A stretch of DNA of 64,000 nt, from positions 62,001 to 126,000 of the IMG/VR virus record IMGVR_UViG_3300032322_002561. One strand, 5' to 3'. Position numbers and translations under genes: made by a program. The notes below the pieces were generated by a model. The model was not told the origin of the DNA. It saw nothing but the letters and a program-made list of their open reading frames with translations, and made no database searches. Shown piece by piece: positions 7,073 through 62,291 of this stretch. The number at the start of each line of letters is the position of its first letter. Position 1 is the first letter of the stretch.

Positions 7073-9073
7073 ATGCAAGATATTGTCCTTTTCTCTGTGC
7101 CGTACATAGAGCCAACCGCGCCGTCGGCTGGTCCTGCTCTCTTGAAGGGATATTTGGTGACTCAAGGATTTGCTGTCACAGCCTACGACTGGAACGTGGA
7201 GTTCAAAAAACACATCAACGATCCAACTCTGTACGGAGAATTTATAGCTTATTGGACCGGTGGCAACAAAACGGCCATGAGCAAACACAGTCTCAAACGC
7301 TATCATGATTTTTTGGAAGACTACGCTAAAAAATTTGCTGAAATCAAAACTAGATGGTTGGGGTTTGGTGTGTTTTCAGACCACAGTAGGCAGTGTTTAT
7401 TTGATCTGTTGACTCATCTCAAGCAACAAGACTTAGGAACAACAAGAATTGTGGTTGGTGGACATGGTTTAGATGTGGTATATTTGGACAGTATTTCACA
7501 CCTGATTGATGCATACATTCTAGGAGAAGGTGAGATAGCTCTCAGAGAATTATTGCGCGAAAATTTTTCGTACCCTGGCATCAATAGTGCTTCGGTTCAA
7601 ATTGATGATTTAGATCAACTTGGTTATGCTGACTACAGTGATTATGATTTAACCAATGGATATGATCTTTGGTATGATTCGCCCATGATCCAAATCACTG
7701 GCAGTAGAGGTTGTGTTCGTAGTTGCAGTTTCTGTGAGGTTCCAAGTATTTGGAAAAAATATAGATACAGGTCTGGAACCAGTTTGGCAAACGAGATCAT
7801 AACCAATCACGAAAAAACCGGCATCAGACATTTTTATTTCACCGACAGTTTGATAAACGGCAATGTCAAACAACTGATGGAAATGATGTCTATACTGACA
7901 AAGTACAAGCAGGACACTGGATCTGATCTTACCTGGGGAGGTCAGTGGATTTCTAGACCACAAAAAGGTCTACCCAAAGACTATTACAAGTTGATCAAAA
8001 GCAGTGGCGGTTTCAATTTGTCTATAGGTGTTGAAACCGGCAGTGATGCAGTGCGAGAGCACATGAAGAAAGGTTTTACCAATCAAGACCTTGATCTAGA
8101 AATGGAACAGTTCAGCCGTCACGGTATAAGATGTGGTTTTTTCATTTTACTAGGCTATCCCACCGAAACCGAAAAAGATTTCAAAGATACTCTGCGTATG
8201 TTCAAACGTTACACAAAATATGTGGCAGATGGAACTCTTATTGGTGTAGCAATTGGTAATGGATATTTTGCAGGTGCAAAAACACCCATAATCTTGGAAG
8301 GTCAGGAAGTCAAATATCTTGACAACAACAATTCAGTCAAATGGGTGTCCACTACAACCAACAGCAATTTCATGGAAAATATTCGACGCAGATTGATCGC
8401 ACAAAAAGTATTAAACAGTCTAAAATGGCCCTCGTCCAATATTGAATATGAACTGAGAGGTGTTATCAGCAACAGCAATCTGTATTTTGACAAACAAGAT
8501 AAACCTTTGGTAGAAGAACTGATTCGCAACAAAAATCTTGAACCTGACCAGGAATTTTTAGCCGAAATTGAGCCACATGCTTATGAAATCAGCGTGACTC
8601 TACTTGGGGTGGCAGGTGAAACTGATCCCGTGGTTGACATACAAATAAACAATGTAAAATATCAAAATCTTCTGGTGCAGGGACTACAAACTTTTACTTT
8701 TAAAGTTGACCAAGCACGCAAAAGAAATCTGGTCAAAATTGCCTTGGTCAACAAAACTAACTTGGACACAGTGCTACAACATGGTCAAATAGTCAAAGAC
8801 AAACATGTAAAAATTGAAAATTTAACCATTCACGGCAGCAGGTTTGCCCAACCTTTTTTACTCATGCAGGGCAAAGTAAAAACCAAGGCCGCGGGCTGGC
8901 AAGCGTATCGAGATGGTCTGTATGTCCAGGATGATTGTTACAGTTTATATTTTGAAAATCCTGTTCATCCTTATTTCATCAAGAAAAACAAATACTACTT
9001 TGAAACTAGGAATCAATTTGCTAAAGACATGTTACAAAAGGTCACAAATCTTTTTCATGATTTTGTAAATTAA
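7073..9073 (+). CDS. B12-binding radical SAM protein
   Basis: VVGG, GEGE, SRGCVRSCSFC (CxxxCxxC), GVETGS, GYPTET. Confidence 0.85.
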   Translation: MQDIVLFSVPYIEPTAPSAGPALLKGYLVTQGFAVTAYDWNVEFKKHINDPTLYGEFIAYWTGGNKTAMSKHSLKRYHDFLEDYAKKFAEIKTRWLGFGVFSDHSRQCLFDLLTHLKQQDLGTTRIVVGGHGLDVVYLDSISHLIDAYILGEGEIALRELLRENFSYPGINSASVQIDDLDQLGYADYSDYDLTNGYDLWYDSPMIQITGSRGCVRSCSFCEVPSIWKKYRYRSGTSLANEIITNHEKTGIRHFYFTDSLINGNVKQLMEMMSILTKYKQDTGSDLTWGGQWISRPQKGLPKDYYKLIKSSGGFNLSIGVETGSDAVREHMKKGFTNQDLDLEMEQFSRHGIRCGFFILLGYPTETEKDFKDTLRMFKRYTKYVADGTLIGVAIGNGYFAGAKTPIILEGQEVKYLDNNNSVKWVSTTTNSNFMENIRRRLIAQKVLNSLKWPSSNIEYELRGVISNSNLYFDKQDKPLVEELIRNKNLEPDQEFLAEIEPHAYEISVTLLGVAGETDPVVDIQINNVKYQNLLVQGLQTFTFKVDQARKRNLVKIALVNKTNLDTVLQHGQIVKDKHVKIENLTIHGSRFAQPFLLMQGKVKTKAAGWQAYRDGLYVQDDCYSLYFENPVHPYFIKKNKYYFETRNQFAKDMLQKVTNLFHDFVN

Positions 9074-14543: not shown

Positions 14544-14634
14544 GCGTGCTTTATATATCAACACACAACAAGGCACCATTAGAATCCGGTTACGAATCCG
14601 GAACCACTCTATGATTGTGGTCGATTTTAAAATT

Positions 14635-15642
14635 TTACTTCTTGATCAAGGCCCACTGCTCTCGGCGGATACGATCTGTCACAGCCTTAGGTAGTGGCAC
14701 ATAATCTAGCTCTAGAGCACTCTTGGCACCGTTGTCCCACGACCAGGCAAAGAACTTGAGCACTTCTTGTGTGGCTTTGACATCCTTGGGTTCACGATAC
14801 ACCAGGATGAATGTGGCACCTGTGATGGGCCAAGCATCAGCACCTTTTTGATTTACCAAGCTGATGCCCATGCCGGGTGTCTTGAACCAGTCAGCGTCAC
14901 GGGCAGCCGCGGCAAATGTCTTGTCATCGGGATCCACATACCGGCCATCACGATTCTGCATCTTCATATGGGTAAGATTATTTTTCTTGGCATAGGCATA
15001 TTCCACATAACCAATTGAACCTTTGACACGAGCCACGTTGGCCGCAACACCTTCGTTGCCTTTGCCACCCACGGCTGTTGCTGGAATCCATTTGACTGCC
15101 GCGCCTTTGCCCATGCGTTCAGCCCAGGGCTTTGACACTTCGTTCAAGTAGTCGGTAAAGATGAATGTTGTACCTGATCCATCCGCACGATGTATCACAG
15201 TGATGGCCTGGTCAGGTAAGGTCCGACCTGGGTTTAATGCGGCAATTTTTGGGTCGTTCCATTTGGATACGGTTCCAAGGTAAATGTCTGCTAACACTGG
15301 GCCTGTGAGCTGTAGTTCGCCTGGTTTGAATCCGTCTAGGTTAATGATAGGAACTACACCACCCAGCACTGTGGGAAACTGGATCAGGCCAGCCTGTGCC
15401 AGATCTGCCACATTCATAGGAGCATCTGTGGCTCCAAAATGTACTGTACCGGCACGGATCTGTTTGATACCGCCCGAGCTACCAATACTCTGATAATTGA
15501 GCTTGACTCCGCTGACTTTTTCATAGTCTTTGGACCATTTGGCATAAACGGGATATGGGAATGTGGCACCAGCGCCGGTGATTTCTACAGCAGACACTGA
15601 AGTCGCTAATACTGTTAATACAGCGGCTAAAAACTTTTTCAT
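14635..15642 (-). CDS. pstS: Phosphate ABC transporter substrate-binding protein
   Basis: Signal peptide; GAGATFPYP, YQSIGSSGG, HRADGSGTT, GKGNEGV, IGYVE. Confidence 0.97.
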   Translation of the reverse strand: MKKFLAAVLTVLATSVSAVEITGAGATFPYPVYAKWSKDYEKVSGVKLNYQSIGSSGGIKQIRAGTVHFGATDAPMNVADLAQAGLIQFPTVLGGVVPIINLDGFKPGELQLTGPVLADIYLGTVSKWNDPKIAALNPGRTLPDQAITVIHRADGSGTTFIFTDYLNEVSKPWAERMGKGAAVKWIPATAVGGKGNEGVAANVARVKGSIGYVEYAYAKKNNLTHMKMQNRDGRYVDPDDKTFAAAARDADWFKTPGMGISLVNQKGADAWPITGATFILVYREPKDVKATQEVLKFFAWSWDNGAKSALELDYVPLPKAVTDRIRREQWALIKK

Positions 15643-15685
15643 TGAATCTCCTTTGAATTAATGTGCGATTGCACAACATTACTTA

Positions 15686-15713
15686 ATTACAATTTTGTTA
15701 CAGTTTTATGACA
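15686..15713 (-). promoter_or_regulatory. Pho box upstream of pstS
   Basis: TGTCATAAAAC-TGTAACAAAAT-TGTAAT: three 11-bp-spaced repeats matching the PhoB consensus. Confidence 0.85.
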
Positions 15714-15744
15714 CAGTCCGGTTACGGGCTCCGGTGGCACCCAA

Positions 15745-16755
15745 TCATTGTGCCCGATTTGTTTCGACTAAATTATCTCTAAATATCTGCCAGCAAGCCG
15801 CCCAGGTCCAACGACTGCTAGCCTGTTCCACTTGCCTTCTGTCCAGGGTCATACAGCGTTCCACAGCATGAGCCAGGTTCCAATCCAGGTATCCAGTGAC
15901 TCCTGATTCCACTATGTCTATAGGTCCTGGCACAGGATAGGCAGCCACTGGAGTGCCACAGGCCAAGGCTTCAATGTTGACCACACCAAAGGTGTCCACC
16001 CGGCTGGCAAACACAAACACATCGGCCTGAGCATAGTAACTGGCCAGTTCAAGTCCGGTTTTGGTACCCACAAACTCTACTTCAGGATATCGCCGTTCCA
16101 GTTCCCGGCGATAAGGGCCATCACCCACAACAATCTTGTGGCACCAGGGCATGTCTAGCTCACAGAAATCATCCAGGCCTTTTTCCTTGCTCACACGTCC
16201 CACACTCAGCAACACTGGCTTGACATTTGAGCCTGTTCTTAGACTGGGACTAAAATAAGTTCTATCTACTCCACGAGTCCAGGCCACAAGATCGCCATCA
16301 AAGCCATGTGCCTGAAGTTCTTGCCGCATGGTTTCTGTTGTGGTCAGCACTCGTCCTGAATGCTTGTGAAACCATCGCAAGTAAGCATAGGTCCAGGATT
16401 CGGGTATGTAATACAGCTTGTTTAGGAATTCTGGAAACTTGGTATGATAACTAGTGTTGTAGGCCCAGTCGTGCCAGTCCATCCACAGTCGTGCCGCTAG
16501 TCCGATAGGGCCTTCTGTAGCGATATGTACATAGTCCGGATCAATCTCGTTGATCTTACGGCCAATCCTCCAGGACCATGAGATTTTAACTTCAGGATAA
16601 CCCAAAGCATTACAATGAGGGAACTGCCGGGGATCAAGATAAACAACATCATAGCCATCGCCACGAGCCAACGCCTGGATGTTCGTGAAAGTTGTGACCA
16701 CACCATTGATTTGCTCCGGTAAATTGTCTGTGACAATCAGGATTTTTTTTGACAT
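15745..16755 (-). CDS. GT4 glycosyltransferase, Agt-like glycolipid synthase
   Basis: QINGVVTT, HIATEGPIG, YHTKFPE, VGRVSKEK, DTFGVVNIEALACGTPV; adjacent to a plcP-like gene. Confidence 0.85.
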   Translation of the reverse strand: MSKKILIVTDNLPEQINGVVTTFTNIQALARGDGYDVVYLDPRQFPHCNALGYPEVKISWSWRIGRKINEIDPDYVHIATEGPIGLAARLWMDWHDWAYNTSYHTKFPEFLNKLYYIPESWTYAYLRWFHKHSGRVLTTTETMRQELQAHGFDGDLVAWTRGVDRTYFSPSLRTGSNVKPVLLSVGRVSKEKGLDDFCELDMPWCHKIVVGDGPYRRELERRYPEVEFVGTKTGLELASYYAQADVFVFASRVDTFGVVNIEALACGTPVAAYPVPGPIDIVESGVTGYLDWNLAHAVERCMTLDRRQVEQASSRWTWAACWQIFRDNLVETNRAQ

Positions 16756-16910
16756 TGTGTGACTACCTTGAAACTATCAAATTTGAGCCAGTAGGTGACT
16801 GTGGCCTGTGCCCGTAAACATTCTTCTTGGGTGGCAAACTCAATGCTTGCTCTTCCGGGAATGTCTTGTGGATTGTTGGTGTGTACTGCTATCAGTATCA
16901 GCAACCACAT
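16737..16910 (-). CDS. Small exported/membrane protein (57 aa, not in ORF track)
   Basis: MWLLILIAVH...ECLRAQ...TQCQKKS; purine-rich GGAGAAGGAC upstream; overlaps both neighbours. Confidence 0.55.
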   Translation of the reverse strand: MWLLILIAVHTNNPQDIPGRASIEFATQEECLRAQATVTYWLKFDSFKVVTQCQKKS

Positions 16911-17664
16911 CGTCCTTCTCCTTGAGCCAGGTCACTATCTCCCAGGCTCCGTTGTGATGTTCAACTAGAGCGGTCAATGACTCTACCCAGTCGCCATCGT
17001 TCATGTACACCACACCATTTATGGTTTTGATTTCTGCGTGATGTATGTGTCCACAGATCACGCCATCATAGCCCTTTTTACGACAGTAGGTGGCCAGGTT
17101 TACTTCAAACTGGAACACAAAGTCCACGGCCTTTTTGACTCGGTATTTTAGGAACTTGCTTAACGACCAGTAGCCAAAGCCTAGCCTGTGCCGCAACCAG
17201 TTGAATCTGCTGTTGAGATTTAACACGAAATCATACAGTCTGTCGCCTAAAAAGCTGAGCCAGGGTGTGATTCGTGTAATGCCATCAAATAAATCGCCGT
17301 GTGTGACCAGGTAGTGACGTCCGTCCAGGCCAATGTGTTCGGCTTGATTGACCACTTCTATCATGCCAAATCCTATGCCATAAGGTATGAGAGGTCGCAA
17401 AAACTCATCGTGGTTGCCGGCCACGTAGACCACTCGGGTGCCACGTTTGGCATGTCCTAGCACACGTCTTACCACATTGGTATGGCTCTGTTTCCAACGC
17501 CAGCGATTCTGTTGTATCTTCCAGGCATCAATGATGTCACCCACAAGATACAAGGTATCACAGGTGTTGTGTTTGAGAAAGTTGTTGAGCTGTTCAGCCT
17601 TGCAGTCCTTGGTACCAAGGTGTACGTCGCTGATAAAAATAGAACGATAGGTACGGTCTGCCAT
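16840..17664 (-). CDS. plcP: PlcP-like metallophosphoesterase (UDP-2,3-diacylglucosamine hydrolase family; phospholipase C)
   Basis: SDVHLG, LVGDIID, GNHD, HGDLFD, ICGHIH, NDGDWVES. Confidence 0.8.
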   Translation of the reverse strand: MADRTYRSIFISDVHLGTKDCKAEQLNNFLKHNTCDTLYLVGDIIDAWKIQQNRWRWKQSHTNVVRRVLGHAKRGTRVVYVAGNHDEFLRPLIPYGIGFGMIEVVNQAEHIGLDGRHYLVTHGDLFDGITRITPWLSFLGDRLYDFVLNLNSRFNWLRHRLGFGYWSLSKFLKYRVKKAVDFVFQFEVNLATYCRKKGYDGVICGHIHHAEIKTINGVVYMNDGDWVESLTALVEHHNGAWEIVTWLKEKDDVVADTDSSTHQQSTRHSRKSKH

Positions 17665-17686
17665 ACATGTATTTACAGATCAGTGT

Positions 17687-17703
17687 GTTACAGTGTTATG
17701 ACA
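17687..17703 (-). promoter_or_regulatory. Pho box upstream of the plcP-like gene
   Basis: TGTCATAACAC-TGTAAC direct repeat with 11-bp period. Confidence 0.75.
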
Positions 17704-18001
17704 ATTTTATCACAGCCAAGAGTGCTTCGTTGGCATCCCAAAACGCCCAATACCAGCGTTGATGTGTGTCGTTGTCCAGGAATATGGGTTCGGCTTGGTA
17801 GCCTAGATCTCGAATATCGTTGTCCATGGCTTCCCAGGTTGACCACGCAAAGCCACGCTGACCCACTCTGCGATTGCGGTCCACGGGATCAACTACCAGC
17901 ACCGACGCAGGTGGATTGTCATAGTAACGCTGTTCTTGTTTGTTGCGTTCGTAGTAGGGAATGTGGCGATCAAGCCAGGTGGGCCATGATACAGCTTGCA
18001 T
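17696..18001 (-). CDS. Hypothetical protein
   Basis: 101 aa; C-terminus FWDANEALLAVIKL weakly resembles the paralog family. Confidence 0.6.
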   Translation of the reverse strand: MQAVSWPTWLDRHIPYYERNKQEQRYYDNPPASVLVVDPVDRNRRVGQRGFAWSTWEAMDNDIRDLGYQAEPIFLDNDTHQRWYWAFWDANEALLAVIKLS

Positions 18002-18204: not shown

Positions 18205-18642
18205 TTACGAGTTGGCCTTGTGAGCTTCGAGTGTCTTGGTAAACTTGTTGGCGTGGCTACGTTCTGCCTTGGCCAAGGTCTCAAACCAGTCAGCGATCTC
18301 GTCAAAGCCTTCATCGCGTGCTTCTTTGGCCATGCCAGGATACATGTCTGAATACTCATGTGTTTCACCATGGATGGCAGCTTCAAGAGCTTCGGCCACA
18401 GTGCTGGCAGGCATGCTGGTACCAGGTTCACCAGCACCACCCGTGATCAAGTACTCCATGTGACCATGGGCGTGACCTGTTTCACCTTCTGCGGTGGAGC
18501 GGAATACAGCTGCCACATCTGGTGCACCAGCGATGTCAGCCATGTTTGCGAAATACAAATAACGACGGTTTGCTTGGCTCTCACCAGCAAATGCTTCTTT
18601 GAGATTGGTCTCAGTACGGGTTCCTTTTACGGATTTTGGCAT
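18205..18642 (-). CDS. rbr: Rubrerythrin (short form)
   Basis: [35 protein letters not shown]. Confidence 0.92.
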
Positions 18643-28430: not shown

Positions 28431-28790
28431 GACTATTTTGGGTAACAAGGCATAGTTGCCCCGGAGATCATGCCGCTAAGGCAAAGACCTCGTCGTTGGC
28501 TGCGTTTGCAGTTATCGTTGTGCTTCTACAACCGGGTGTCCCCAGTCCTAACGGGTTTCGCATTCCCGTGTAGATCCTGTCCATACTTGTTGCCACGTCG
28601 AAACTGTGTCATCCCCACCAAAAAGACCTAGCAATTCTGGATCAATGTGCCAGCTCCAGCTCATGCTGTAATTCCACAAATTCAAGGGTGGAAAACTATC
28701 GGTCCATTGCTCCATAAAAGTCCTTTTGGTGGAGATGCCGGGTTCTGCCCCCGGGTCCGCAACACCTTTCTGTCAAGGCATTAAACTACA
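28431..28790 (-). ncRNA. ssrA: Circularly permuted (two-piece) tmRNA
   Basis: Acceptor piece ending CATCTCC-A-CCA (3' end at 28727) precedes the GGGGATG 5' end (28616); G3:U70 pair; tag ANAANDEVFALAA-stop at 28509..28468; outer ends approximate. Confidence 0.92.
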
Positions 28791-39333: not shown

Positions 39334-40182
39334 TTACTTGCCCCAGCCATTGCCCCACAAGTCCACATGCAACCTTGGACTGTACCAATAGCCGCGCTTG
39401 AGTGCTTCGTCGGCCACGTGAATTCTGTTGCCATCATACACGCTGACAACTCCGCCCACAGGCATCACAAAAACTGGACCTGCAAAGCCGCGCTCGCGAT
39501 ATGTTGCCACGGCACGATCCAATTCTTCAAAATCTTCCAGGCGTTCCACTACAAATTTCAAGTAGGTGACTCCGTGTAATTCATATTCCCACACGACATC
39601 GGGCTTGATAGCACTGTCCCATGTTTCACCTGACACACTCAACTTGGGGCTAACACTAAAAGTGATTTCACCAAACCAGTCGTCCAAGTAGTTGGCAAAT
39701 TCCCGGTGTAGTTCTTGAGTGCCATTGGTTTCAAATGTGATGTGTCTAAGTCCACGCTCGTGCAAGATGTCTAACAGCTCGGGATAGATTCGTTGCCAGC
39801 CCAACAGTGGTTCGCCGCCAGTGATCACAAGATGAACGGGATTTCCGTTCTTGAACTGCATCCACTGATTGTTGGGCAACAAACTGTGAATACGATCTGC
39901 CAATTCTGCAGCAGTGTATGTTGGACTTAGATGTTTAAAAGCCGGGTGCCATGACGCATAACTGTCGCAACCAGTGTCCACTAGTGGTAATTCTTCAAAC
40001 GTTTTGTAAAGATGCACTGACTTGGCAATTTCATCTGGCTCAGTAGTTTTCTCTCCAGGCTTACAACCAAATCCGGCACACTGAAAGTTGCAACCAAACA
40101 TGCGTAAGAAAATACTGGGCACGCCTACATAGCGACCTTCGCCTTGTGCTGAATAAAATATTTCACTGACTTTGAAATCCAT
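39334..40182 (-). CDS. queE: 7-carboxy-7-deazaguanine synthase (radical SAM)
   Basis: SEIFYSAQGEG..G.P..FLR.FGC, CDS, ITGGEP, ETNGT, SPKL, PRLH. Confidence 0.92.
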   Translation of the reverse strand: MDFKVSEIFYSAQGEGRYVGVPSIFLRMFGCNFQCAGFGCKPGEKTTEPDEIAKSVHLYKTFEELPLVDTGCDSYASWHPAFKHLSPTYTAAELADRIHSLLPNNQWMQFKNGNPVHLVITGGEPLLGWQRIYPELLDILHERGLRHITFETNGTQELHREFANYLDDWFGEITFSVSPKLSVSGETWDSAIKPDVVWEYELHGVTYLKFVVERLEDFEELDRAVATYRERGFAGPVFVMPVGGVVSVYDGNRIHVADEALKRGYWYSPRLHVDLWGNGWGK

Positions 40183-40190
40183 ACTTGTTC

Positions 40191-40919
40191 CTATAATCTT
40201 GTAACTGTACTTAGACCGCTTTGAGTCATTGTCAAATTCTTTGCCTCATTAGCAATTTTAACACGAAGTTTGCAATTTGTCATCCAACCTGGCAATACTG
40301 CATCCAAATACTGTAAATGTTCCAGCGGTGTTGGATGCGGATCTCCTTGATTGCGCCAACCTTGTGCAAATACCGTGCTTCTAAAACTGGGTAGCATGAT
40401 GTCTAAAGCATCTCGATAAACATTCAAGACATCTTGATCTGGTGTCTCTGTGTCATCAAATTGATGTACATTGCCAAGATCACACACGCTTAAAAACCGC
40501 CAAGTTGCACCAGTTTGTTCTAGCACTGTTTTGGCGGCTTGAATCATGGCCAAGTCTCTTATGAGCGAACCACGTTCGGTCACAGCCGCCCGCACATAGT
40601 CCTTGTTGTATATGGGACAGGATGTGATATTGCCCAAAGTCTGCCAACGATCGGTGTAGCGATCCTCACGCATGACATTGGTCCAACATACCAACACAGT
40701 ATCTGACTCGCCCAAACTATGACGTTGGTTGGCTTCAATCAGGCTGTTAAAGATAAAGTGATTGCCAGCACCACTTTGAGCCCAATTTTGGTAATGTGCA
40801 AATTGTGTGCCCAAAAGGTCAGCCCAAGTGGGCCAACGATAATTTGTAAAACTACATCCAAAAGTAAAAAGTCTTGAGCCTTTTACCTCCACCACTCCTC
40901 CCAGGGAAACACAATCCAC
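40191..40919 (-). CDS. SGNH-like protein
   Basis: FGCSFT..WPTW, GAGN, DPHPT; start uncertain. Confidence 0.6.
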   Translation of the reverse strand: MDCVSLGGVVEVKGSRLFTFGCSFTNYRWPTWADLLGTQFAHYQNWAQSGAGNHFIFNSLIEANQRHSLGESDTVLVCWTNVMREDRYTDRWQTLGNITSCPIYNKDYVRAAVTERGSLIRDLAMIQAAKTVLEQTGATWRFLSVCDLGNVHQFDDTETPDQDVLNVYRDALDIMLPSFRSTVFAQGWRNQGDPHPTPLEHLQYLDAVLPGWMTNCKLRVKIANEAKNLTMTQSGLSTVTRL

Positions 40920-41419
40920 ACATCCTTGTCTGCTTTGTTTATGGCCACAGCTGAATATGTGACATCCAGTTTGCTCTTGCTTGACTCATTGTCATACAAG
41001 CATGCCACACGCACATTGTTGCCCCAGACTTCTTTCCAACGTTTGTCTTTGGGGAAACAACCGCTTTGCCAATCTTCTTTGATCCAGTTTAGTGTGGCGC
41101 CCGAATCGTTGATGTCATCTACAATCAAGATATTTTTACGTCCGTCTCCGCTGGCTTGCGGATCAAACTCTCTGTGACCATAGGCATCTTCAGCCATCCA
41201 TAAGTTGCTTTCTTGTTCAGCGCCATCTCGCAAGCTGACCTTGAGTGTTTCCATTCTGCAACCCAAGTACTGACTGATCAAGTTGGCCGGCACTAGACCG
41301 CCACGTGTTATACCAACCACATAGTCAGGCTGCCACTGGTCCCGGTGCAATTGTCTTAGAAGCTCTTGCACTTGCTTCTCCACGTCTTGCCACGTCAATG
41401 TTATTCGTTGTGTTGCCAT
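40883..41419 (-). CDS. Type I phosphoribosyltransferase (Gpt-like)
   Basis: VGITRGG, ILIVDDINDSGAT, WIVFPWE. Confidence 0.9.
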   Translation of the reverse strand: MATQRITLTWQDVEKQVQELLRQLHRDQWQPDYVVGITRGGLVPANLISQYLGCRMETLKVSLRDGAEQESNLWMAEDAYGHREFDPQASGDGRKNILIVDDINDSGATLNWIKEDWQSGCFPKDKRWKEVWGNNVRVACLYDNESSKSKLDVTYSAVAINKADKDVWIVFPWEEWWR

Positions 41420-43334
41420 GTGTTTCTACCGTTGCCTTTCCAAAATTTCTACGCCGTGCAAAATAAAACATTTCTAAAAAAGTAGGAAAACTCATGTTTT
41501 TGTCTTCGGGAAAATCTAGATTATACACTGTAGGCGATTCTTCCAAAGGCTGACCAAAAGTCAAGTAATCCCAGATATTGTAATCCAATTCCAAGGATTG
41601 TGGATATTGATCAATGTCTGGATATGCAATAAAATACTTGCGCTGAAACTTCATGACACTGTCCAACAGTTCCTTGGGCAAGTTATATTGTAACATAAAT
41701 CTGTATAAAAGGTCAAACACCTGATCGTATCTTGATTCTTCGTGCAGTTTTAATATGGTTCGGTGCATGAGGTTCCAACCATAAATTTCAATGCCCCCAA
41801 TGTCAGGATGGTCAATTTTGTCACTGCTCATCCAGTTTTGATTGTATTGTCTAGTATCCAGCATTTCTTTATGGAACCAGGAATCCTGCTGTATGAATTC
41901 AAATAAATCTTCATAGAATTGTGAGTAGTCAATATCCAGATATTGATAAACAAATCTGCTCAACAAAGTGCTCAGCCCATTGATATGAAAAGTGTTTATG
42001 AACCAAGAATACACTTGAGCATCCAGCATGGATTCATGTGGCATGTCCTTGGTGCCAGTGATGATTTCGATGCTTTCAATAATTTGTTCGTTTTTGTATG
42101 ATCCACTGAAGTAGTCAGTGACTCTGTTGCCAGTAATCTTAAAAAGTTTTCTTTGCAATAGATTCATTTCGGCATTTTCCAACAGTTGGGCCTGAAACAC
42201 CGTGAGTCCTGTGTGATTACCCATGCGGAACAATTTCCAAAAATTATCTTTCCAGGTCTGTAAACTTTCACCAGGCAAGCCAAGTATGAGTTCGGTATAG
42301 GTGGGAATGTTGCGCTGTTCACACAGTTCAAACACTTCTTCCAACTTGTTCATTTCCATGTTTTTACGACGAATGTTTTCCAGAACATCCACGTCCAAAC
42401 TCTGTACACTGAGTGTGAGACCCTGATTGAAGCCTGGTGCATTCAGTAGCTTGGTTATGATATCAACCACTTCACGTTTTTGATTCTTGGCCCAGGCCAC
42501 CGAGAAGGTCTTGGGAAATCCATAGCGTTCTTGTATTTCTATGATTTTATCTGCAATGAGATTGTCTCTGTCGGGGAACATGCCAAAGTTAGCATCGGTG
42601 ATTGAAATAAAACCCACACGGTGCTGTGCCATCCACTCAAGTTCCTCAAATACTCGATCCAAGCGATAGTGTTTGACCTTGTTGTAGGTCAAGCTGCCCC
42701 AGTCACAGAATGTGCAAGCAAATGGACATCCACGATTGGTTTCCAAGGTACCGTTCCACTCCACGTCGGGATTTTCTGCAATGATTTTGTCAAACACTCC
42801 GGTAAGATAGGGACTGGGTATGTCTTCAAGATTTTCTATGCGTTTGGCATCGCCTGTATTGATGGGTTCACCGTTGCGATTGATCAAGAGTCCTGGAATA
42901 TCGTCCCAGCAACGCTTTTCAAAGGCCTGTATTACTCGTTGAAAAGTTATTTCGCCCTCAAAACAAATAATCATGTCCATGTAGGGCTCTTTGCGAAAGA
43001 TATCAGGATCTGTGATGGCCGGCTCTGGCCCACCAAAAATTATCACACAGTCGGGATTGGCTGCTTTGACTGCACGAGCCACGGTGTAGTTGTACTGGTG
43101 ATTCCACACATAGGTACTAAAAGCCACCACATCGTTTTGAGCCAAGCGAGCCACCACATCATCTATGGCTTCACGCCGCCAAATCATGTCGGTGCACTCA
43201 AAATTTTCTCGAATCCATGGATCAGTGAGGGCATAGCTCCAAATCACTCCTGCGCTATAGGGCAAGTAGTGTGCATTCAGCTCTTTGGGTCCTTGTTGAA
43301 AATTGGGTTGTACCCAGGCAATCTTATAGGTCAT
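41325..43334 (-). CDS. B12-binding radical SAM protein
   Basis: LPYS, FGGP, ETNRGCPFACTFCDWG, ILGLPGE. Confidence 0.88.
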   Translation of the reverse strand: MTYKIAWVQPNFQQGPKELNAHYLPYSAGVIWSYALTDPWIRENFECTDMIWRREAIDDVVARLAQNDVVAFSTYVWNHQYNYTVARAVKAANPDCVIIFGGPEPAITDPDIFRKEPYMDMIICFEGEITFQRVIQAFEKRCWDDIPGLLINRNGEPINTGDAKRIENLEDIPSPYLTGVFDKIIAENPDVEWNGTLETNRGCPFACTFCDWGSLTYNKVKHYRLDRVFEELEWMAQHRVGFISITDANFGMFPDRDNLIADKIIEIQERYGFPKTFSVAWAKNQKREVVDIITKLLNAPGFNQGLTLSVQSLDVDVLENIRRKNMEMNKLEEVFELCEQRNIPTYTELILGLPGESLQTWKDNFWKLFRMGNHTGLTVFQAQLLENAEMNLLQRKLFKITGNRVTDYFSGSYKNEQIIESIEIITGTKDMPHESMLDAQVYSWFINTFHINGLSTLLSRFVYQYLDIDYSQFYEDLFEFIQQDSWFHKEMLDTRQYNQNWMSSDKIDHPDIGGIEIYGWNLMHRTILKLHEESRYDQVFDLLYRFMLQYNLPKELLDSVMKFQRKYFIAYPDIDQYPQSLELDYNIWDYLTFGQPLEESPTVYNLDFPEDKNMSFPTFLEMFYFARRRNFGKATVETHGNTTNNIDVARRGEASARASKTIAPGPVAA

Positions 43335-44197
43335 GCCTTATTTACTTGACTTAATTTTTGTTGTTTTTCAAAGTGAGTGTGTGGATTAGCAAACTGCACC
43401 ATTTGTTTGTTGACATCGTTTTGTGCAAGTTTTTCCCAGGGATCTTGTTTGTGCAAGAACACATTTTCAAAAAAAGTCATGTCCTGATTTCGCGTATTTT
43501 TCAAATAGGTAGCTATTTTGGCAGCATCCCTATGACGCAGTTCGATCATGGGTGCGCTGTGAAAGTCGTCTGGATCACTGGGTTTGCCCTCTAGCATGGC
43601 ACGACGTTTGAATGTTTCGTCACCGTTGTTGCCGGTCAAATCAAAGCGATCATGTTCAACCCACACCGGTATTCTCTGCCAGATATCCAACAAATAGGCC
43701 TGTTGACTCAACCAACCATCCTGCGTGGGGTGCGGGCTGATATACCCCAAGAGATCATACCATTCGCGTGGAACTATGGGGAATATACTGTAGGGATGAT
43801 CATTGTGAGTGTGGAAAGCCAAGAGCTTGAACTGACCGGTATAGCGAATGATTTCTGTGTCCCAGCCCTGAGTCTGCATGATGGCATCATCATTCCAGAT
43901 CACAATCCAATCACTGTCGGTCTTGGCTGCTAGTTTGTTGTTGTACACATTGAGTCTAATATAGCCCAAGGGATCAAACAACATGGCGGTGTAAACGGCC
44001 TTGACTGAATCAAGATAGGGTTTAATTGTGTCCGTGAAATATTTTTGTCCAATGGCATCATCACGGTCCAAGGCTATCATGATCTGCACACGATTGTAGT
44101 CGTCGGCGAGATCTATTAAACTTTGCAGACTGCGCATCAAGGCATCAGTTCGACCACGTGTGGGTAACAATATGGAAAGAGCATATTTGTGATTCAT
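43331..44197 (-). CDS. GT2/GT-A glycosyltransferase
   Basis: SILLPTRGR, WNDD. Confidence 0.75.
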   Translation of the reverse strand: MNHKYALSILLPTRGRTDALMRSLQSLIDLADDYNRVQIMIALDRDDAIGQKYFTDTIKPYLDSVKAVYTAMLFDPLGYIRLNVYNNKLAAKTDSDWIVIWNDDAIMQTQGWDTEIIRYTGQFKLLAFHTHNDHPYSIFPIVPREWYDLLGYISPHPTQDGWLSQQAYLLDIWQRIPVWVEHDRFDLTGNNGDETFKRRAMLEGKPSDPDDFHSAPMIELRHRDAAKIATYLKNTRNQDMTFFENVFLHKQDPWEKLAQNDVNKQMVQFANPHTHFEKQQKLSQVNKA

Positions 44198-44200
44198 TGA

Positions 44201-44791
44201 CTATCCTTCGTATATGGCACTGTTACCGGCATGCTCAAATACTTCTGCTGAACGTAATTTAACGCCTGATCCTACTGGATAGCGAGCCTTGTGTATGTTG
44301 CCGTTGGGGCAATGATAGTTGTTGCCTGTTTTAAAAATATGCAGTATGGTGGCCATTTCCTTATAGGCAAGTTCAGCAAACTTTTCGCAACCCACACCTT
44401 CCACGATCCTTAAATCACACACACCGCCTTGATCTTGCAATCCCAACTGGGCCATTTGTTTAAACATACCTTTGTGAGGATCATCATGTGCTACCACGAG
44501 AGTATGATCAAACATGTATTCGCTCCACTCTTTAAAGGCCTTGAGTCCACCAAAGTCCATGACCCAGTTGCGGTCATCCAGGGTTTCGCTTTCAAATACG
44601 AGTTTGATACCAATTGAGTATCCGTGTAGTAATGAGCAGTGACTATGTGTGCTACGCCATTGACGGAAGCAACAACTCAATCCGCGATCGTTGCCATATG
44701 TTTTTGTTGAAACGTATTTGGCTTTGGTCGTGCTTTCATTGAGCTGTCTTGTTGTTTCTTTTCCAATCTGTTCTTCTGTGTAATGAATCAT
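44201..44791 (-). CDS. queD: 6-carboxytetrahydropterin synthase
   Basis: HCSLLHGYS, WVMDFG, FDH, EKFA, VFE. Confidence 0.9.
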   Translation of the reverse strand: MIHYTEEQIGKETTRQLNESTTKAKYVSTKTYGNDRGLSCCFRQWRSTHSHCSLLHGYSIGIKLVFESETLDDRNWVMDFGGLKAFKEWSEYMFDHTLVVAHDDPHKGMFKQMAQLGLQDQGGVCDLRIVEGVGCEKFAELAYKEMATILHIFKTGNNYHCPNGNIHKARYPVGSGVKLRSAEVFEHAGNSAIYEG

Positions 44792-44797
44792 GCTGGT

Positions 44798-44864
44798 TCT
44801 CCTATGTTAATTTTAGCATAGGCTTGCAGAATTTGTAAAGCGGGATGAATGCCGGAAGACCGCT
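44798..44864 (-). promoter_or_regulatory. Structured 5' leader of queD (riboswitch-like candidate)
   Basis: AGCGG/CCGCT stem, then CCTATG/CATAGG hairpin overlapping the AGGAG RBS. Confidence 0.5.
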
Positions 44865-44871
44865 AAGATTA

Positions 44872-45240
44872 TTATTTAACTCGATAATTGCCACGCTCGG
44901 GAATAACATGGCGAACACCACCACGTGGATCTTCCATGTCACCTTTTCTGCGAGGAATGAGATGCACGTGCGGATACATAACTGTTTGCCCGGCAGCCTC
45001 TCCCCAGTTGATACCAATATTGAAACCATTCCACTCGCCAGAGTTGACTTGTGCCTGGCCCCATTTTAGTGCGTCAGCAAAACAATCTTCAATCACACCG
45101 TTGGCTGTGTACTTGGGCACAAACAACAAATGGCCTTCAGTAACTGGGTAACGATCACGATATACCACGACGTGGAAATCTTCACGTACTACATCATTCC
45201 AAGGTGCTATACCTAATCGTTGTGCTTCCTCAAGATCCAT
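44872..45240 (-). CDS. HIT-family nucleotide hydrolase
   Basis: GHLLFVPK, GFNIG..AAGQTV..PHVHLIPR. Confidence 0.9.
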   Translation of the reverse strand: MDLEEAQRLGIAPWNDVVREDFHVVVYRDRYPVTEGHLLFVPKYTANGVIEDCFADALKWGQAQVNSGEWNGFNIGINWGEAAGQTVMYPHVHLIPRRKGDMEDPRGGVRHVIPERGNYRVK

Positions 45241-45242
45241 GT

Positions 45243-45428
45243 TTATTTTGTTTTTTTTGTTACTACTTCAAGATCTAATCCCACAGCCAAGAGCCAGGAA
45301 TTAATGCGTTCGGCCACAACATCTTCGTGTATGGGATTATCCCACTGCATGTCTATGCGCACAGCAAGATCACCGGTTTCGACATGCAGATTTTGATATT
45401 GCAAATAGTAACTGACCTTGTTGCTCAT
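45243..45428 (-). CDS. Hypothetical protein
   Basis: 61 aa coupled ORF. Confidence 0.55.
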   Translation of the reverse strand: MSNKVSYYLQYQNLHVETGDLAVRIDMQWDNPIHEDVVAERINSWLLAVGLDLEVVTKKTK

Positions 45429-46264
45429 CTTGGTGCAAACTCCTGTTGCAGTTTGATATTGTCCATGAACTCTTTTTTAACACTTGAATCTGTGCTGAAC
45501 ACACCTCGTAACACTGTGGTTTGTGTCAGACTTGAGTGTGCCATGATACCACGATTTTCGCAACAACCGTGAGTGGCCTGGATATACACACCTACGTTGA
45601 CACTGTCTGTGGCTTTCATGATTTCTCGTGCGATGTCATTACATAGTTCTTCCTGAAGTGTACCACGACGAGCACACCATTGAGCAATACGAGTATACTT
45701 AGAAAGACCAATAAGTTTATTGGCAGCAATGATTCCGATATAAGCGACGCCGTTAACAGGCTGGTGATGGTGACTACACATACTACGCAACTCACTGCGT
45801 ACAACCAACATTCCTTCATATCTATCCTCCGAATCGTTAGGGAAAGCAGTAGCATCTGGTGCCGGCTCATAGCGTCCTGCCATGATTTCATTGAAATACA
45901 TCTTGGCCAAGCGACGTGCTGTACCTTGGCTGTTGGGATCTGTTTCGCGATCGATCAACAAAGTGTCTAGCACCTTTTCAAATGCTTCTGTGGCTTCATC
46001 GATTAATTTTTGTTTTTTGTTTTCATCTTCGATAAATTCACTGATGTTGTCTCCAGCCCAAAAGCGTTTGCCCGTGGCTCGCATGTTTTCACGAATCACT
46101 TGGCTCAGTGGGCGTCCTTCATCTAGATCAATCACGGCATCTTCATAACCAGGATGATATGGTGCCTCTGCCACAATACGGCTTTGTTGTAAGACATCGA
46201 ATGTTTTTTGGCTGGCATTATTTTTCACTGCGTTCTCTCTATCGTCACTGGTAAATGTTGTCAT
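45425..46264 (-). CDS. folE: GTP cyclohydrolase I
   Basis: SMCSHH, GLSKYTR, LQE, HGC..RG. Confidence 0.95.
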   Translation of the reverse strand: MTTFTSDDRENAVKNNASQKTFDVLQQSRIVAEAPYHPGYEDAVIDLDEGRPLSQVIRENMRATGKRFWAGDNISEFIEDENKKQKLIDEATEAFEKVLDTLLIDRETDPNSQGTARRLAKMYFNEIMAGRYEPAPDATAFPNDSEDRYEGMLVVRSELRSMCSHHHQPVNGVAYIGIIAANKLIGLSKYTRIAQWCARRGTLQEELCNDIAREIMKATDSVNVGVYIQATHGCCENRGIMAHSSLTQTTVLRGVFSTDSSVKKEFMDNIKLQQEFAPR

Positions 46265-46877: not shown

Positions 46878-47920
46878 GACATTCTACCTAGATCAACTGT
46901 GCCAAAAAATACATTGCTTAGGGCACGATTTGTATAACTGGCCATGTGTGCAGTTACACCGTGACGATGCAAGGCCGTAAGCACAGTGTCGTTTTCAACA
47001 TCCACAATGATATTTTTACTGTCAATAGACAACAGTCCAACTGGCATGCTGGGCCACAAATTAGACCAAGCTGGGTCTAAGAAATCAATTGCACGTTTGT
47101 ATTCGCTGTTGATGTCAGCAAAGGCATCTGGTACATCAGTGACCGTGACTATTTCCCAGTCTGGAAAAAATTTACCAAGATTTAGGTCTGGTTCGAAACA
47201 TAAAACCAGGCCTGGACAGGGTATCGCAAAAGATTTTTTCCAACGGCCTGAAGTTGTTATCACATGATTCTCACTGTCTGTAAAAATACTATCTATTTGC
47301 TGTTGTGCCCAGACCGCGTTTGATTCCTGTGCTTCAAAGTATCTGTGCGCACCTGCACATGTCACGCTAGACAACAACGTCATGGTGGCTTGATCAACTT
47401 CATGTACAGTGACATAATTTTCAAGTTCTGGCAGAACTTCGTTAAAGCACCCCCACTGACTGGTAAAGTCTTCCATGTGCTTTTGCAGACCATGTATTTT
47501 TTTACATTCTTCCTTGATGGCATCAGGTAAACCTTCAAAGTTTTTGTAATCATTGCAAGCGGGCCATGAAACGTCGGCAACATTTTTGTAAAATTCAGCA
47601 AAGTCAAATTCAATCAAGGGACAATAAAAGGCTTTGTCCGCTATAACAATCAAATTGTTTCTGGGACTATAACTGGCGGCCACATATTTTTTTTGCCACT
47701 GCGGTAGTACCGGATATCTTGTGCGAAATATCTCAACCTCGTGCAACCAAAGTTTGCCCAAGAGCCAGTTGGCATTTTGTTCAATTTCATTGGTGATCAA
47801 TTCAACACTGTTGCGTAATTCTATATCTGTAATATCAACAAAAAGTTCTGGCAGATATGATGTCCCTATCAGACAGGCCTTGAGTGGATCCCAGTCTTGA
47901 TATTTGGAAAATTTTATCAT
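46874..47920 (-). CDS. Divergent amidinotransferase-fold protein
   Basis: WDPLKACLIG, SPRN, terminal TVDL.R; catalytic Cys/His not evident. Confidence 0.55.
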   Translation of the reverse strand: MIKFSKYQDWDPLKACLIGTSYLPELFVDITDIELRNSVELITNEIEQNANWLLGKLWLHEVEIFRTRYPVLPQWQKKYVAASYSPRNNLIVIADKAFYCPLIEFDFAEFYKNVADVSWPACNDYKNFEGLPDAIKEECKKIHGLQKHMEDFTSQWGCFNEVLPELENYVTVHEVDQATMTLLSSVTCAGAHRYFEAQESNAVWAQQQIDSIFTDSENHVITTSGRWKKSFAIPCPGLVLCFEPDLNLGKFFPDWEIVTVTDVPDAFADINSEYKRAIDFLDPAWSNLWPSMPVGLLSIDSKNIIVDVENDTVLTALHRHGVTAHMASYTNRALSNVFFGTVDLGRMS

Positions 47921-62253: not shown

Positions 62254-62291
62254 AAACCTATTTATCATAATCTTAGCCTATAAATATGGCT

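Follow-up and report, generated by a model that had tools for sequence, protein, structure and literature searches.

A phage-borne operon predicted to mediate membrane lipid remodelling during phosphate starvation, located next to pstS in a jumbo myovirus

Introduction

Why would a bacteriophage carry genes resembling a bacterial operon that exchanges membrane phospholipids for sugar lipids, next to a gene for a phosphate-binding protein? Bacterial PlcP-Agt lipid-remodelling operons are known from Phaeobacter sp. MED193, SAR11 HTCC7211, Pseudomonas aeruginosa (PA3219/PA3218), Burkholderia cenocepacia (plcP-agt-dagK), Sinorhizobium meliloti (SMc00171) and Agrobacterium (Agt, atu2297) (PMC4796936; PMC13691135). 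The initial annotation of a 64-kb stretch of DNA, hereafter the window, proposed that a PlcP-like phosphoesterase, a 57-aa small protein, a GT4 glycosyltransferase and PstS are encoded in one run, with separate Pho boxes before plcP and pstS, and that the phage mines host membrane phosphate for its DNA under control of the host PhoBR system. Here we asked whether the locus is real, whether it is phage-encoded, and whether its genes and promoters are of the proposed types.

Results

The locus and its genetic context

Sequence analysis confirmed the four ORFs and both boxes, all on the minus strand, and revealed additional elements:

17687..17715 (-): Pho-box-type array before plcP, with three heptamers in 11-bp phase (CTGTGAT-AAAA-TTGTCAT-AACA-CTGTAAC), overlapping the stop codon of the upstream 101-aa ORF
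17670..17675 (-): -10-like TAAATA hexamer, 11 nt after the last heptamer and 5 nt before the plcP ATG
16840..17664 (-): plcP-like metallophosphoesterase gene, 274 aa, predicted to encode a phospholipase C that releases diacylglycerol (DAG) from phospholipids
16918..16923 (-): Shine-Dalgarno (SD) sequence AAGGAG of the small gene, inside the plcP coding sequence and 7 nt before the small gene's ATG
16737..16910 (-): conserved phage-specific 57-aa gene of unknown function
15745..16755 (-): Agt-type GT4 glycosyltransferase gene, 336 aa, predicted to encode a DAG glycosyltransferase making glucosyl- or glucuronosyl-DAG
15718..15734 (-): conserved intergenic stem-loop CCGGAGCCCGTAACCGG, 14 nt after the GT4 stop and before the pstS boxes
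15686..15714 (-): Pho-box-type array before pstS, with three heptamers in 11-bp phase (GTGTCAT-AAAA-CTGTAAC-AAAA-TTGTAAT)
14635..15642 (-): pstS, with its own SD (AAAGGAG)
14585..14601 (-): second copy of the stem-loop (CCGGATTCGTAACCGGA), 37 nt after the pstS stop

In contrast to the initial annotation, the 57-aa ORF does not lie between the genes, but overlaps the last 71 nt of plcP and the first 19 nt of the GT4 gene. The stem-loop element is strand-specific, recurs at gene borders in related phages and shows CCGG/CCGG to CTGG/CCAG covariation.

The window belongs to a jumbo myovirus. Over the PlcP match and the adjacent genes compared, it is 100% identical to a 236-kb IMG/VR viral contig, and it carries 11 tRNAs, a permuted tmRNA and a T4-type DNA polymerase matching phrog_262, which is nearest to those of Sinorhizobium phage Phosso (49.6%) and Agrobacterium phage Atu_ph07 (45.8%). 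Moreover, relatives lie on 300-513-kb contigs that carry a Gp38 gene.

The phosphoesterase groups with PlcP-type proteins rather than LpxH

The phosphoesterase matched the Pfam Metallophos domain at 44 bits, and the metal-binding residues D13, H15, G42-D43, G83-N84-H85-D86, H122 and H206/H208 were invariant across 63-65 family members including the window protein. In contrast, the NCBIfam LpxH models NF003743 and TIGR01854 scored only 45.9 and 36.3 bits against cut-offs of 134 and 190.35, respectively, and LpxH chains in the PDB matched by sequence only at E about 1e-5, with the match restricted to the N-terminal half at E about 3e-5. In the phylogenetic tree, E. coli LpxH was separated by a very long branch, while the phage clade (SH-aLRT 97) was sister to gammaproteobacterial, Pseudomonas-type proteins. 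An AF2 model (pLDDT 87) predicted an LpxH-like core with a two-helix lid; LpxH was the best fold match in the PDB (E about 1e-9 to 5e-10), although at only 17-23% identity and a TM of about 0.5-0.6.

The nearest cellular relatives are proteobacterial proteins with 48-57% identity, including 56-57% for Pseudomonas homologues and 48-57% for those of Burkholderiales and Alphaproteobacteria, and in 52 of the 80 nearest bacterial genomes a full-length homologue of the phage GT4 (37-45% identity) directly follows the gene. This is the plcP-agt arrangement characterised in B. cenocepacia (PMC13691135) and in marine bacteria (PMC4796936), and natural GT4-PlcP fusion proteins also exist. Orthology rests on this synteny, on motifs taken from a paper and on the taxonomy of the nearest relatives, rather than on a tree that includes MED193_17359, PB7211_983, SMc00171, PA3219 or atu2297, or on the BLASTP criterion of Sebastian et al. 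(E<1e-40 against MED193_17359).

The glycosyltransferase carries the residues reported for Agt/GTcp enzymes

The glycosyltransferase matched GT4 Pfam domains, while NCBIfam lipid glycosyltransferase models hit only weakly, for example the MGlcDAG synthase model at 39 bits against a cut-off of 400. The DAG-dependent GTcp enzyme is described as a GT-B GT4 protein of about 334 aa with a His-Asp catalytic dyad, the UDP-sugar motifs GRVAxEKN and FPSxTDTFG, a Gly-rich motif and the DAG-contact residues His104, Thr162, Arg163 and Trp320. Reading the window protein against this description, without a direct alignment to GTcp, we found G18, G82, G85, H104, T160-R161, GRVSKEKG (186-193, with R187 and K192), FASRVDTFG (249-257, with Asp254), E262 and W318, which, apart from the three Gly residues, correspond to the residues shown to be essential in GTcp. 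These are conserved in 56 phage and 45 bacterial plcP-linked GT4s. However, the acidic catalytic residue is Glu in 38 of the 56 phage GT4s, and the D256E change lowered GTcp activity by more than 90%.

PstS scored 421.8 bits against the NCBIfam equivalog NF008171 (cut-off 339) and 374.5 bits against TIGR00975 (cut-off 205), and matched the phosphate transporter subunit phrog_5385. Its N-terminus MKKFLAAVLTVLATSVSA has, by eye, the form of a signal peptide.

Pho-box-type arrays are specific to plcP and pstS

The initial annotation placed boxes at 17687-17703, which reads TGTCATAACACTGTAAC, and at 15686-15713, which holds TGTCATAAAACTGTAAC and TGTAACAAAATTGTAAT. The pattern TGTMAY-N5-TGTMAY had three exact matches across both strands of the window, all at these two promoters, compared to a shuffle expectation of 0.37, and 1 of 100 shuffles reached three. 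Boxes scoring at least 11 of 12 were present about 46 nt before plcP in 56 of 84 related phage loci, where about 1 is expected, and before pstS in 11 of 11 loci that have the gene, but upstream of the internal GT4 in 0 of 63. Bacterial plcP genes carried TGTCAC-type boxes in 15 of 80 loci, where about 0.4 is expected. The arrays have the phased heptamers of a Pho regulon promoter, with the last heptamer at plcP ending 11 nt before TAAATA, although the phage half-sites are mostly TGTAAY rather than the canonical TGTCAY. Furthermore, in many relatives the box lies about 21 nt rather than about 10 nt from the -10-like hexamer, and in one related locus a homing endonuclease has removed the plcP box, yet the operon is kept.

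The initial annotation had not noted that the plcP promoter looks leaderless. No SD sequence is present before plcP in the window. TAAATA lies 4-5 nt before the ATG in 45 of 65 distinct phage plcP promoters, of which only 7 have an SD-like sequence, and we infer a leaderless or near-leaderless mRNA.

A phage-specific small gene and a widespread module

Two further points had also been overlooked, namely that the small gene is a conserved phage-specific addition and that the module is widespread. The 57-aa gene was intact in 53 of 53 related loci, representing 38 distinct sequences, with AAGGAG or CAGGAG conserved upstream, and its codon-position entropy runs pos3 > pos1 > pos2, including in the overlap with plcP, where it overprints the PlcP C-terminal tail. 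It was absent from 80 bacterial loci and gave only a weak hit to phrog_5579. AF2 predicted a beta-beta-alpha-beta fold (pLDDT 95) without a match in the PDB.

At least 127 IMG/VR contigs carry close PlcP relatives, and in about three quarters of the 80 examined the GT4 is adjacent. Phage PlcPs and phage GT4s each form one clade. The phage PlcP clade includes Mosig_00120 of Pelagibacter phage Mosig EXVC030M (47.7% identity), annotated as a putative UDP-2,3-diacylglucosamine hydrolase, which lies next to a phage pstS in divergent orientation, has the same ATAAATATTG-N-ATG start region and has a small ORF overlapping its 3' end. However, Mosig, which has a cultured host and a low-G+C genome of 141 kb, has no GT4 partner, its small ORF is not detectably homologous to the 57-aa gene, and its upstream repeats are TTAACA-type.

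Discussion

We consider it reasonably likely that the locus is a phosphate-stress auxiliary module built from a captured bacterial plcP-agt operon and located next to a phage pstS. Every part of the initial interpretation that sequence analysis can address came out as proposed. In the suggested mechanism, host PhoB~P would bind the 11-bp-phased TGT(C/A)AY repeats in place of a -35 element when the infected cell is phosphate-starved, thereby activating a probably leaderless plcP/57-aa gene/agt mRNA and a separate pstS mRNA. PlcP, a predicted LpxH-fold metallophosphoesterase with a helical lipid lid, would cut the phospho-head group off membrane phospholipids and leave DAG, to which the Agt-type GT4 would transfer glucose or glucuronate from UDP-sugars, so that the membrane stays intact while its phosphorus is freed. 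PstS would raise phosphate uptake, and the freed and imported phosphorus would support synthesis of a very large phage genome. In the absence of expression or lipid data and with an unknown host, the enzyme substrates and products, PhoB as the binding protein, leaderless initiation and the benefit to the phage are inferred. Furthermore, PlcP releases phospho-head groups and not free phosphate, so host phosphatases are still needed. Translational coupling of the 57-aa gene to both enzymes suggests that its product may be a partner or regulator of them.

It is possible, although unlikely, that lipid remodelling does occur but serves to block superinfection, alter receptor display, stabilise the cell until lysis or tune lysis timing, since lipid remodelling changes phage attachment and membrane protein content in bacteria (PMC9938194; PMC9804370) and the window is rich in other sugar and envelope genes, including epimerases, aminotransferases, further glycosyltransferases and a NeuD-like acetyltransferase. 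However, the operon sits next to pstS, or shares a regulatory region with it, in several lineages and carries the same phosphate-starvation-type boxes, which ties its expression to phosphate stress rather than to infection as such. Similarly doubtful is that the repeats bind another OmpR-family or phage-encoded regulator, or form part of a phage-specific promoter class, so that expression would follow the infection programme. The prevalence of TGTAAY could point in this direction, as could the conserved TAAATA-N4-5-ATG core, which appears to resemble the T4 late-promoter consensus TATAAATA and travels with plcP even into phage Mosig. On the other hand, the motif has no exact copies elsewhere in the 64 kb, TATAAATA and GTAAATAY are not enriched, the motif precedes pstS, the canonical PhoB target, in 11 of 11 phage loci, and bacterial plcP and pstS genes carry the TGTCAC version at similar positions; natural E. 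coli Pho boxes also seem to include TGTAAT half-sites.

We find it very unlikely that the phosphoesterase is an LpxH-type lipid A enzyme and the GT4 an LPS or capsule glycosyltransferase, together modifying the outer membrane, even though JGI and GenBank name the homologues UDP-2,3-diacylglucosamine hydrolase, LpxH is the best structural match and surveys of viral auxiliary genes list lpxH under LPS biosynthesis. Besides the low scores, low identity and remote tree position of LpxH, the genomic partner is Agt rather than lipid A genes, the GT4 matches the DAG-dependent clade signature and is fused to PlcP in some bacteria, and the nearest relatives include many Alphaproteobacteria, a group that probably uses LpxI rather than LpxH. 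Only a remote possibility remains that the stretch is a bacterial island or a chimeric assembly. The window contains no capsid, terminase or tail gene, and one related 348-kb contig is deposited as a bacterial MAG. However, the PlcP gene and the genes compared around it are identical in two IMG/VR contigs, the phage-type DNA polymerase, thymidylate synthase, exonuclease, tRNA array and CobS-like ATPase phrog_1297 lie on the same strand run, and the module occurs in varied phage contexts on more than 100 viral contigs while being only 48-57% identical to any of 185,579 species genomes.

Compared to the bacterial PlcP-Agt operons, the phage locus has the same gene order, with plcP followed by a GT4 gene of about 335 aa, the metallophosphoesterase motifs, the Agt-clade residues and an upstream Pho-box-type array. 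It differs in being encoded by a virus, in forming its own clades, in the inserted 57-aa gene, in the leaderless-type promoter, in the lack of dagK and in the mostly TGTAAY half-sites. Cyanophages and pelagimyophages likewise carry host-derived phosphate-stress genes (pstS, phoA, phoH), and a Pho box that would place pstS under the host PhoBR system appears to be established for cyanophages (Zeng and Chisholm, 2012; see also PMC10976474; PMC12379486). That known set acts on phosphate uptake or scavenging from outside the cell, whereas the module described here would release phosphorus from the cell's own membrane and rebuild the membrane with glycolipid, and our literature searches found no paper describing this for a phage.

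More tentatively, and perhaps slightly less likely than not, a large and widespread lineage of freshwater and aquatic jumbo phages, and in reduced form pelagimyophage Mosig and a cyanophage, may reprogramme host membranes under phosphate starvation, turning the cell's own phospholipids into a phosphorus reserve for virion DNA. The anciently captured plcP-agt operon would in this case have evolved phage-specific features, namely an overprinted 57-aa partner protein with a predicted new fold, a portable leaderless promoter core and activator boxes exchanged to fit each host's PhoB. The viral 'lpxH' genes that virome surveys count as LPS genes would then really be phosphorus-stress genes.

Organization of the plcP-agt-pstS region

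The sequence analysis confirmed the observation of the initial annotation that a PlcP-like phosphoesterase, a 57-aa small protein, a GT4 glycosyltransferase and pstS lie in one run with separate Pho boxes before plcP and pstS, with the one correction that the small ORF overlaps both of its neighbours instead of lying between them. Between 14635 and 17715 the minus strand carries, in order of transcription:

17715-17687, minus strand: promoter region with three 7-bp repeats in 11-bp phase (CTGTGAT-AAAA-TTGTCAT-AACA-CTGTAAC)
17675-17670, minus strand: TAAATA hexamer
17664-16840, minus strand: 274-aa metallophosphoesterase gene
16910-16737, minus strand: 57-aa ORF, overlapping the end of the first gene by 71 nt and the start of the next by 19 nt
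16755-15745, minus strand: 336-aa GT4 glycosyltransferase gene
15734-15718, minus strand: small stem-loop
15714-15686, minus strand: second array of three phased repeats (GTGTCAT-AAAA-CTGTAAC-AAAA-TTGTAAT)
15642-14635, minus strand: pstS with a good Shine-Dalgarno sequence and signal peptide
14601-14585, minus strand: second copy of the stem-loop

PstS passes the NCBIfam equivalog thresholds (421.8 bits against 339), the glycosyltransferase has GT4 Pfam domains, and the phosphoesterase hits Metallophos and, weakly, LpxH models. The strict pattern TGTMAY-N5-TGTMAY occurs three times in the 64-kb window on both strands, and all three occurrences lie at these two promoters, while the shuffle expectation is 0.37. 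When one mismatch was allowed, no other gene start stood out. A conserved 101-aa ORF with no family hit (17696-18001, minus strand) has its stop codon inside the plcP Pho-box array, and upstream of it lies a rubrerythrin gene (18205-18642, minus strand) that is 69% identical at DNA level to that of Pelagibacter phage Mosig; relatives add a rubredoxin next to the rubrerythrin.

Phage origin of the window

The PlcP gene and the adjacent genes compared are 100% identical to IMG/VR contigs of 236 kb and 75 kb. The window encodes a family-B DNA polymerase (phrog_262, E 1e-193), whose closest cultured relatives are Sinorhizobium phage Phosso (469 kb, 49.6%), Agrobacterium phage Atu_ph07 (490 kb, 45.8%) and the Rak2/121Q-like jumbo phages, as well as thymidylate synthase, an exonuclease, a CobS/MoxR-type ATPase (phrog_1297), 7-deazaguanine pathway genes and eleven tRNAs. 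In addition, a permuted (two-piece) tmRNA was found at 28468-28790 on the minus strand (Rfam RF04321 at 107.7 bits, with a partial alpha_tmRNA hit), for which ARAGORN predicts the tag peptide ANAANDEVFALAA; together with the DNA polymerase, which is nearest to rhizobial jumbo phages, this hints at an alphaproteobacterial host. Close relatives of the PlcP gene lie on metagenomic contigs of 340-513 kb, next to a Gp38 tail-fibre adhesin gene, rubrerythrin and the same ATPase. No structural gene falls inside this window, and no GenBank phage is similar at DNA level. The region is also very rich in auxiliary metabolism genes, as a 7-deazaguanine-type gene set (QueE-like, QueD-like, GTP cyclohydrolase) and at least four radical SAM proteins, two of them with B12-binding domains, are encoded at 39334-46264 and 7073-9073, 41325-43334, 47917-49752 and 62286-63344, and nucleotide-sugar epimerases, aminotransferases and further glycosyltransferases are also present.

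Affiliation of the phosphoesterase

The phosphoesterase appears to be PlcP-type rather than LpxH. It scores 45.9 and 36.3 bits against the two LpxH equivalog models, whose cut-offs are 134 and 190, and solved LpxH sequences match only its N-terminal half, at E about 3e-5. An AlphaFold model (pLDDT 87, pTM 0.80) has the calcineurin-like core plus two long inserted helices (134-161 and 168-196), and although LpxH is the best structural match, this is only at TM 0.5-0.6 and 17-23% identity, so that the protein is predicted to have the LpxH architecture for handling a lipid substrate without being LpxH. All metal-binding motifs are invariant in 63-65 diverse homologues.

An exhaustive search of 1.84 billion cluster representatives found 895 clusters at E<1e-30, of which the nearest non-phage clusters are about 55% identical. 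A scan of one genome per species returned as nearest cellular relatives (48-57% identity) mostly Burkholderiales, then Pseudomonas and other Gammaproteobacteria, and many Alphaproteobacteria, although none of the 80 nearest species returned was a characterised strain and our trees contain no characterised PlcP or Agt sequence. In a maximum-likelihood tree the phage sequences form one clade (SH-aLRT 97) that also holds the homologues of Pelagibacter phage Mosig, Synechococcus phage S-SRM01 and an unverified 'Bacteriophage sp.' contig; these three GenBank phage sequences are long branches and their placement is hence tentative. The clade is sister to the gammaproteobacterial, Pseudomonas-type group, whereas E. 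coli LpxH sits on a branch about ten substitutions per site away. The PlcP of L089 (JBCCBQ010000005.1, a 348-kb contig of a 'Pseudomonadota bacterium' MAG), which is 57% identical to that of the window, falls inside the phage clade next to Mosig and is not followed by a GT4, and the size of the contig and its tree position suggest a jumbo phage contig binned into a bacterial MAG.

The glycosyltransferase as an Agt-type partner of plcP

In 52 of the 80 nearest bacterial loci a full-length homologue of the phage GT4 (37-45% identity, E down to 1e-84) starts within about 50-150 nt after plcP on the same strand. This is the plcP-agt operon described for marine bacteria (PMC4796936), and it was demonstrated genetically and by lipidomics in Burkholderia cenocepacia, where agt alone lets E. 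coli make MGDG and GADG (PMC13691135). Some bacteria encode single polypeptides with an N-terminal GT4 and a C-terminal PlcP domain (the metagenomic proteins P0184, P0248 and P0168, of 564-663 aa), in which the GT4 half aligns end to end with the phage GT4 at 30% identity, E 5e-36. A protein atlas also lists GT4-diacylglycerol kinase and PlcP-GT fusions, in Verrucomicrobiota and Pseudomonadota, but the kinase fusions can be regarded only as a lead.

The biochemical study of the SAR11 enzyme GTcp lists the signature of the DAG-dependent GT4 clade as a length of about 334 aa, a His104-Asp256 dyad with Asp where other GT4s have Glu, the motifs GRVAxEKN and FPSxTDTFG, the essential residues Gly16, Gly82, Gly85, Arg190, Lys195, Thr257, Phe258, Gly259 and Glu264, and the DAG contacts Thr162, Arg163 and Trp320. 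The window protein has G18, G82, G85, H104, T160-R161, GRVSKEKG, R187, K192, FASRVDTFG with Asp254, E262 and W318, with the numbering offset by at most three residues. Almost all of these are invariant in 56 phage and 45 bacterial plcP-linked GT4s, while the acidic catalytic position alternates between Asp and Glu. The phage GT4s form one group, separated from the bacterial ones by a branch with SH-aLRT 96, and no GenBank phage has a homologue above 31% identity.

Putative Pho boxes and a leaderless-type promoter

We scanned 150 nt upstream of each gene in all retrieved loci. Upstream of phage plcP, 56 of 84 loci match at least 11 of 12 specified positions and 30 of 84 match all 12, while the background frequency is 9.6e-5 per position, so that about one locus would be expected by chance. 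Upstream of phage pstS 11 of 11 loci match, in contrast to 0 of 63 upstream of the internal GT4 gene. The plcP box is usually about 46 nt before the start codon, and bacterial plcP genes carry the TGTCAC form in 15 of 80 loci, where about 0.4 would be expected. The motif therefore marks phosphate-related genes, in both phages and bacteria, and not phage promoters in general. It is also kept where the upstream neighbour differs, for example in L004, the locus on the 513-kb relative, where it follows a terminator-like hairpin; in this locus a fatty-acid desaturase gene (PF00487, L004:4475-5185), another membrane-lipid gene, lies about 3 kb upstream of plcP.

A second conserved element is TAAATA 4-5 nt before the plcP ATG, which is present in 45 of 65 distinct promoters, while SD-like sequences occur in only 7 of 65. 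In the window it lies 11 nt after the last heptamer, which would correspond to the geometry of E. coli Pho promoters, and we infer a PhoB-dependent promoter that gives a leaderless or nearly leaderless mRNA. However, most phage half-sites are TGTAAY, the spacing to the -10-like element is about 21 nt in many relatives, the host is unknown, and in one close relative, L008, a GIY-YIG-type homing endonuclease gene (L008:7265-7933, minus strand of the locus) inserted between the 101-aa ORF and plcP leaves only the first heptamer (CTGTCAT) of the array and removes the rest. A general T4-late-type promoter was not supported, since TATAAATA and GTAAATAY are not enriched in the window. Pelagibacter phage Mosig has the same ATAAATATTG-N-ATG core, but in the intergenic region shared with its divergent pstS (L001:7842-7991, MT647606.1 about 93979-94128) it carries TTAACA-type repeats (TTTAACA-AAAA-CTTAACA) instead of TGTAAY, which fits, but does not prove, exchange of activator boxes to suit different hosts.

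The 57-aa gene

The small gene has its own AAGGAG 7 nt before its ATG, and the GT4 start overlaps its end; the three genes are therefore translationally linked. It is open in all 53 related loci that have it, comprising 38 distinct sequences of 53-69 aa down to 46% identity, in which A8, D16, P18, C31, K43, F44, F47 and C53 are invariant. Codon-position entropy runs pos3 > pos1 > pos2 in the non-overlapping part (1.34, 1.03, 0.82), and the same order holds in the part that overlaps plcP (1.05, 0.78, 0.31), indicating that the frame of the small gene, and not the PlcP tail, is the constrained one there. AlphaFold gives a very confident beta-beta-alpha-beta fold (pLDDT 95), for which the PDB search found nothing better than E about 1. 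We considered whether the hydrophobic N-terminus is a membrane anchor, or whether the ORF is a frameshift extension of PlcP, but rejected both, since it has its own SD and stop codons just upstream in frame, and the hydrophobic stretch is a buried beta-strand, not a membrane helix, in the model. The only family hit was phrog_5579, of unknown function, at E 4e-4, and no alignment was obtained with the overlapping 72-aa ORF of Mosig, so the two are not shown to be related. The gene is absent from the 80 bacterial loci and from a phage subgroup in which a shorter PlcP abuts the GT4 directly, and it is a phage-specific addition of unknown role.

Distribution of the module

The IMG/VR scan found 127 contigs with close relatives. 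Among the 80 examined (73-100% identity, contigs up to 337 kb), the GT4 follows plcP in about three quarters, the small gene is present in somewhat over half, and pstS is adjacent in ten, either downstream of the GT4 or upstream of plcP. Flanking genes vary widely, so the module sits in a variable region or has moved between genomes. It is bordered by a strand-specific intergenic stem-loop, CYGGA-N2-3-CGTAA-CCRG, with compensatory CCGG/CCGG to CTGG/CCAG changes. All 35 hits in 884 kb of related phage DNA, in loci L008-L079, are on the gene strand, at the borders of plcP, the GT4 gene and pstS, and two copies flank pstS in the window. The element could be a cassette boundary, an RNA 3'-end or processing signal, or a protein-binding hairpin.

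Function and significance

The best-supported reading, in which we have fairly good but not full confidence, is a phosphate-starvation module, in which PhoB-activated plcP-agt would convert phospholipid to glycolipid through diacylglycerol and PstS would raise phosphate uptake, to the benefit of the replication of a phosphorus-expensive jumbo genome. It is possible, though unlikely, that the remodelling serves a purpose other than phosphorus supply, and slightly less likely still that the repeats are bound by a regulator other than PhoB, a reading that the prevalence of TGTAAY half-sites supports, while the restriction of the motif to phosphate-related genes speaks for the Pho reading. An LpxH/LPS function is improbable in view of the low scores against the LpxH models and the remote position of E. 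coli LpxH in the tree, and a non-phage origin of the DNA appears most improbable, despite the absence of structural genes from the window.

Both the pathway and Pho-controlled phage AMGs are already known, whereas a phage-borne plcP-agt operon with its extra gene was not described in any paper that we could find, although most subscription journals were outside our search and prior mention cannot be excluded. Virome surveys list the gene as 'lpxH' and count it among the LPS-biosynthesis AMGs (PMC10653327, PMC9611531), and GenBank records MT647606.1 and MW015081.1 annotate viral homologues as UDP-2,3-diacylglucosamine hydrolase, a lipid A enzyme; many of these calls are probably PlcP-type enzymes. 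A virus-encoded pathway of this kind would change how viral 'lpxH' and glycosyltransferase AMGs are counted, as well as how glycolipid-to-phospholipid ratios in the field are read, because infected cells could contribute, and a cultured system exists in Pelagibacter phage Mosig on HTCC1062, which carries the plcP homologue next to pstS. Moreover, the conserved 57-aa protein has a new predicted small fold tied to a lipid pathway, and the recurring TAAATA-N5-ATG core suggests a promoter that moves together with the gene.

Phosphate limits production in many lakes and ocean regions, and phage phosphate genes such as pstS, phoA and phoH are textbook examples of viruses steering host metabolism. 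A virus-encoded pathway that strips phosphorus from the host membrane and replaces it with glycolipid would add an internal phosphorus source to that picture, a source that is especially relevant for jumbo phages, whose genomes cost several hundred thousand phosphate groups per virion.
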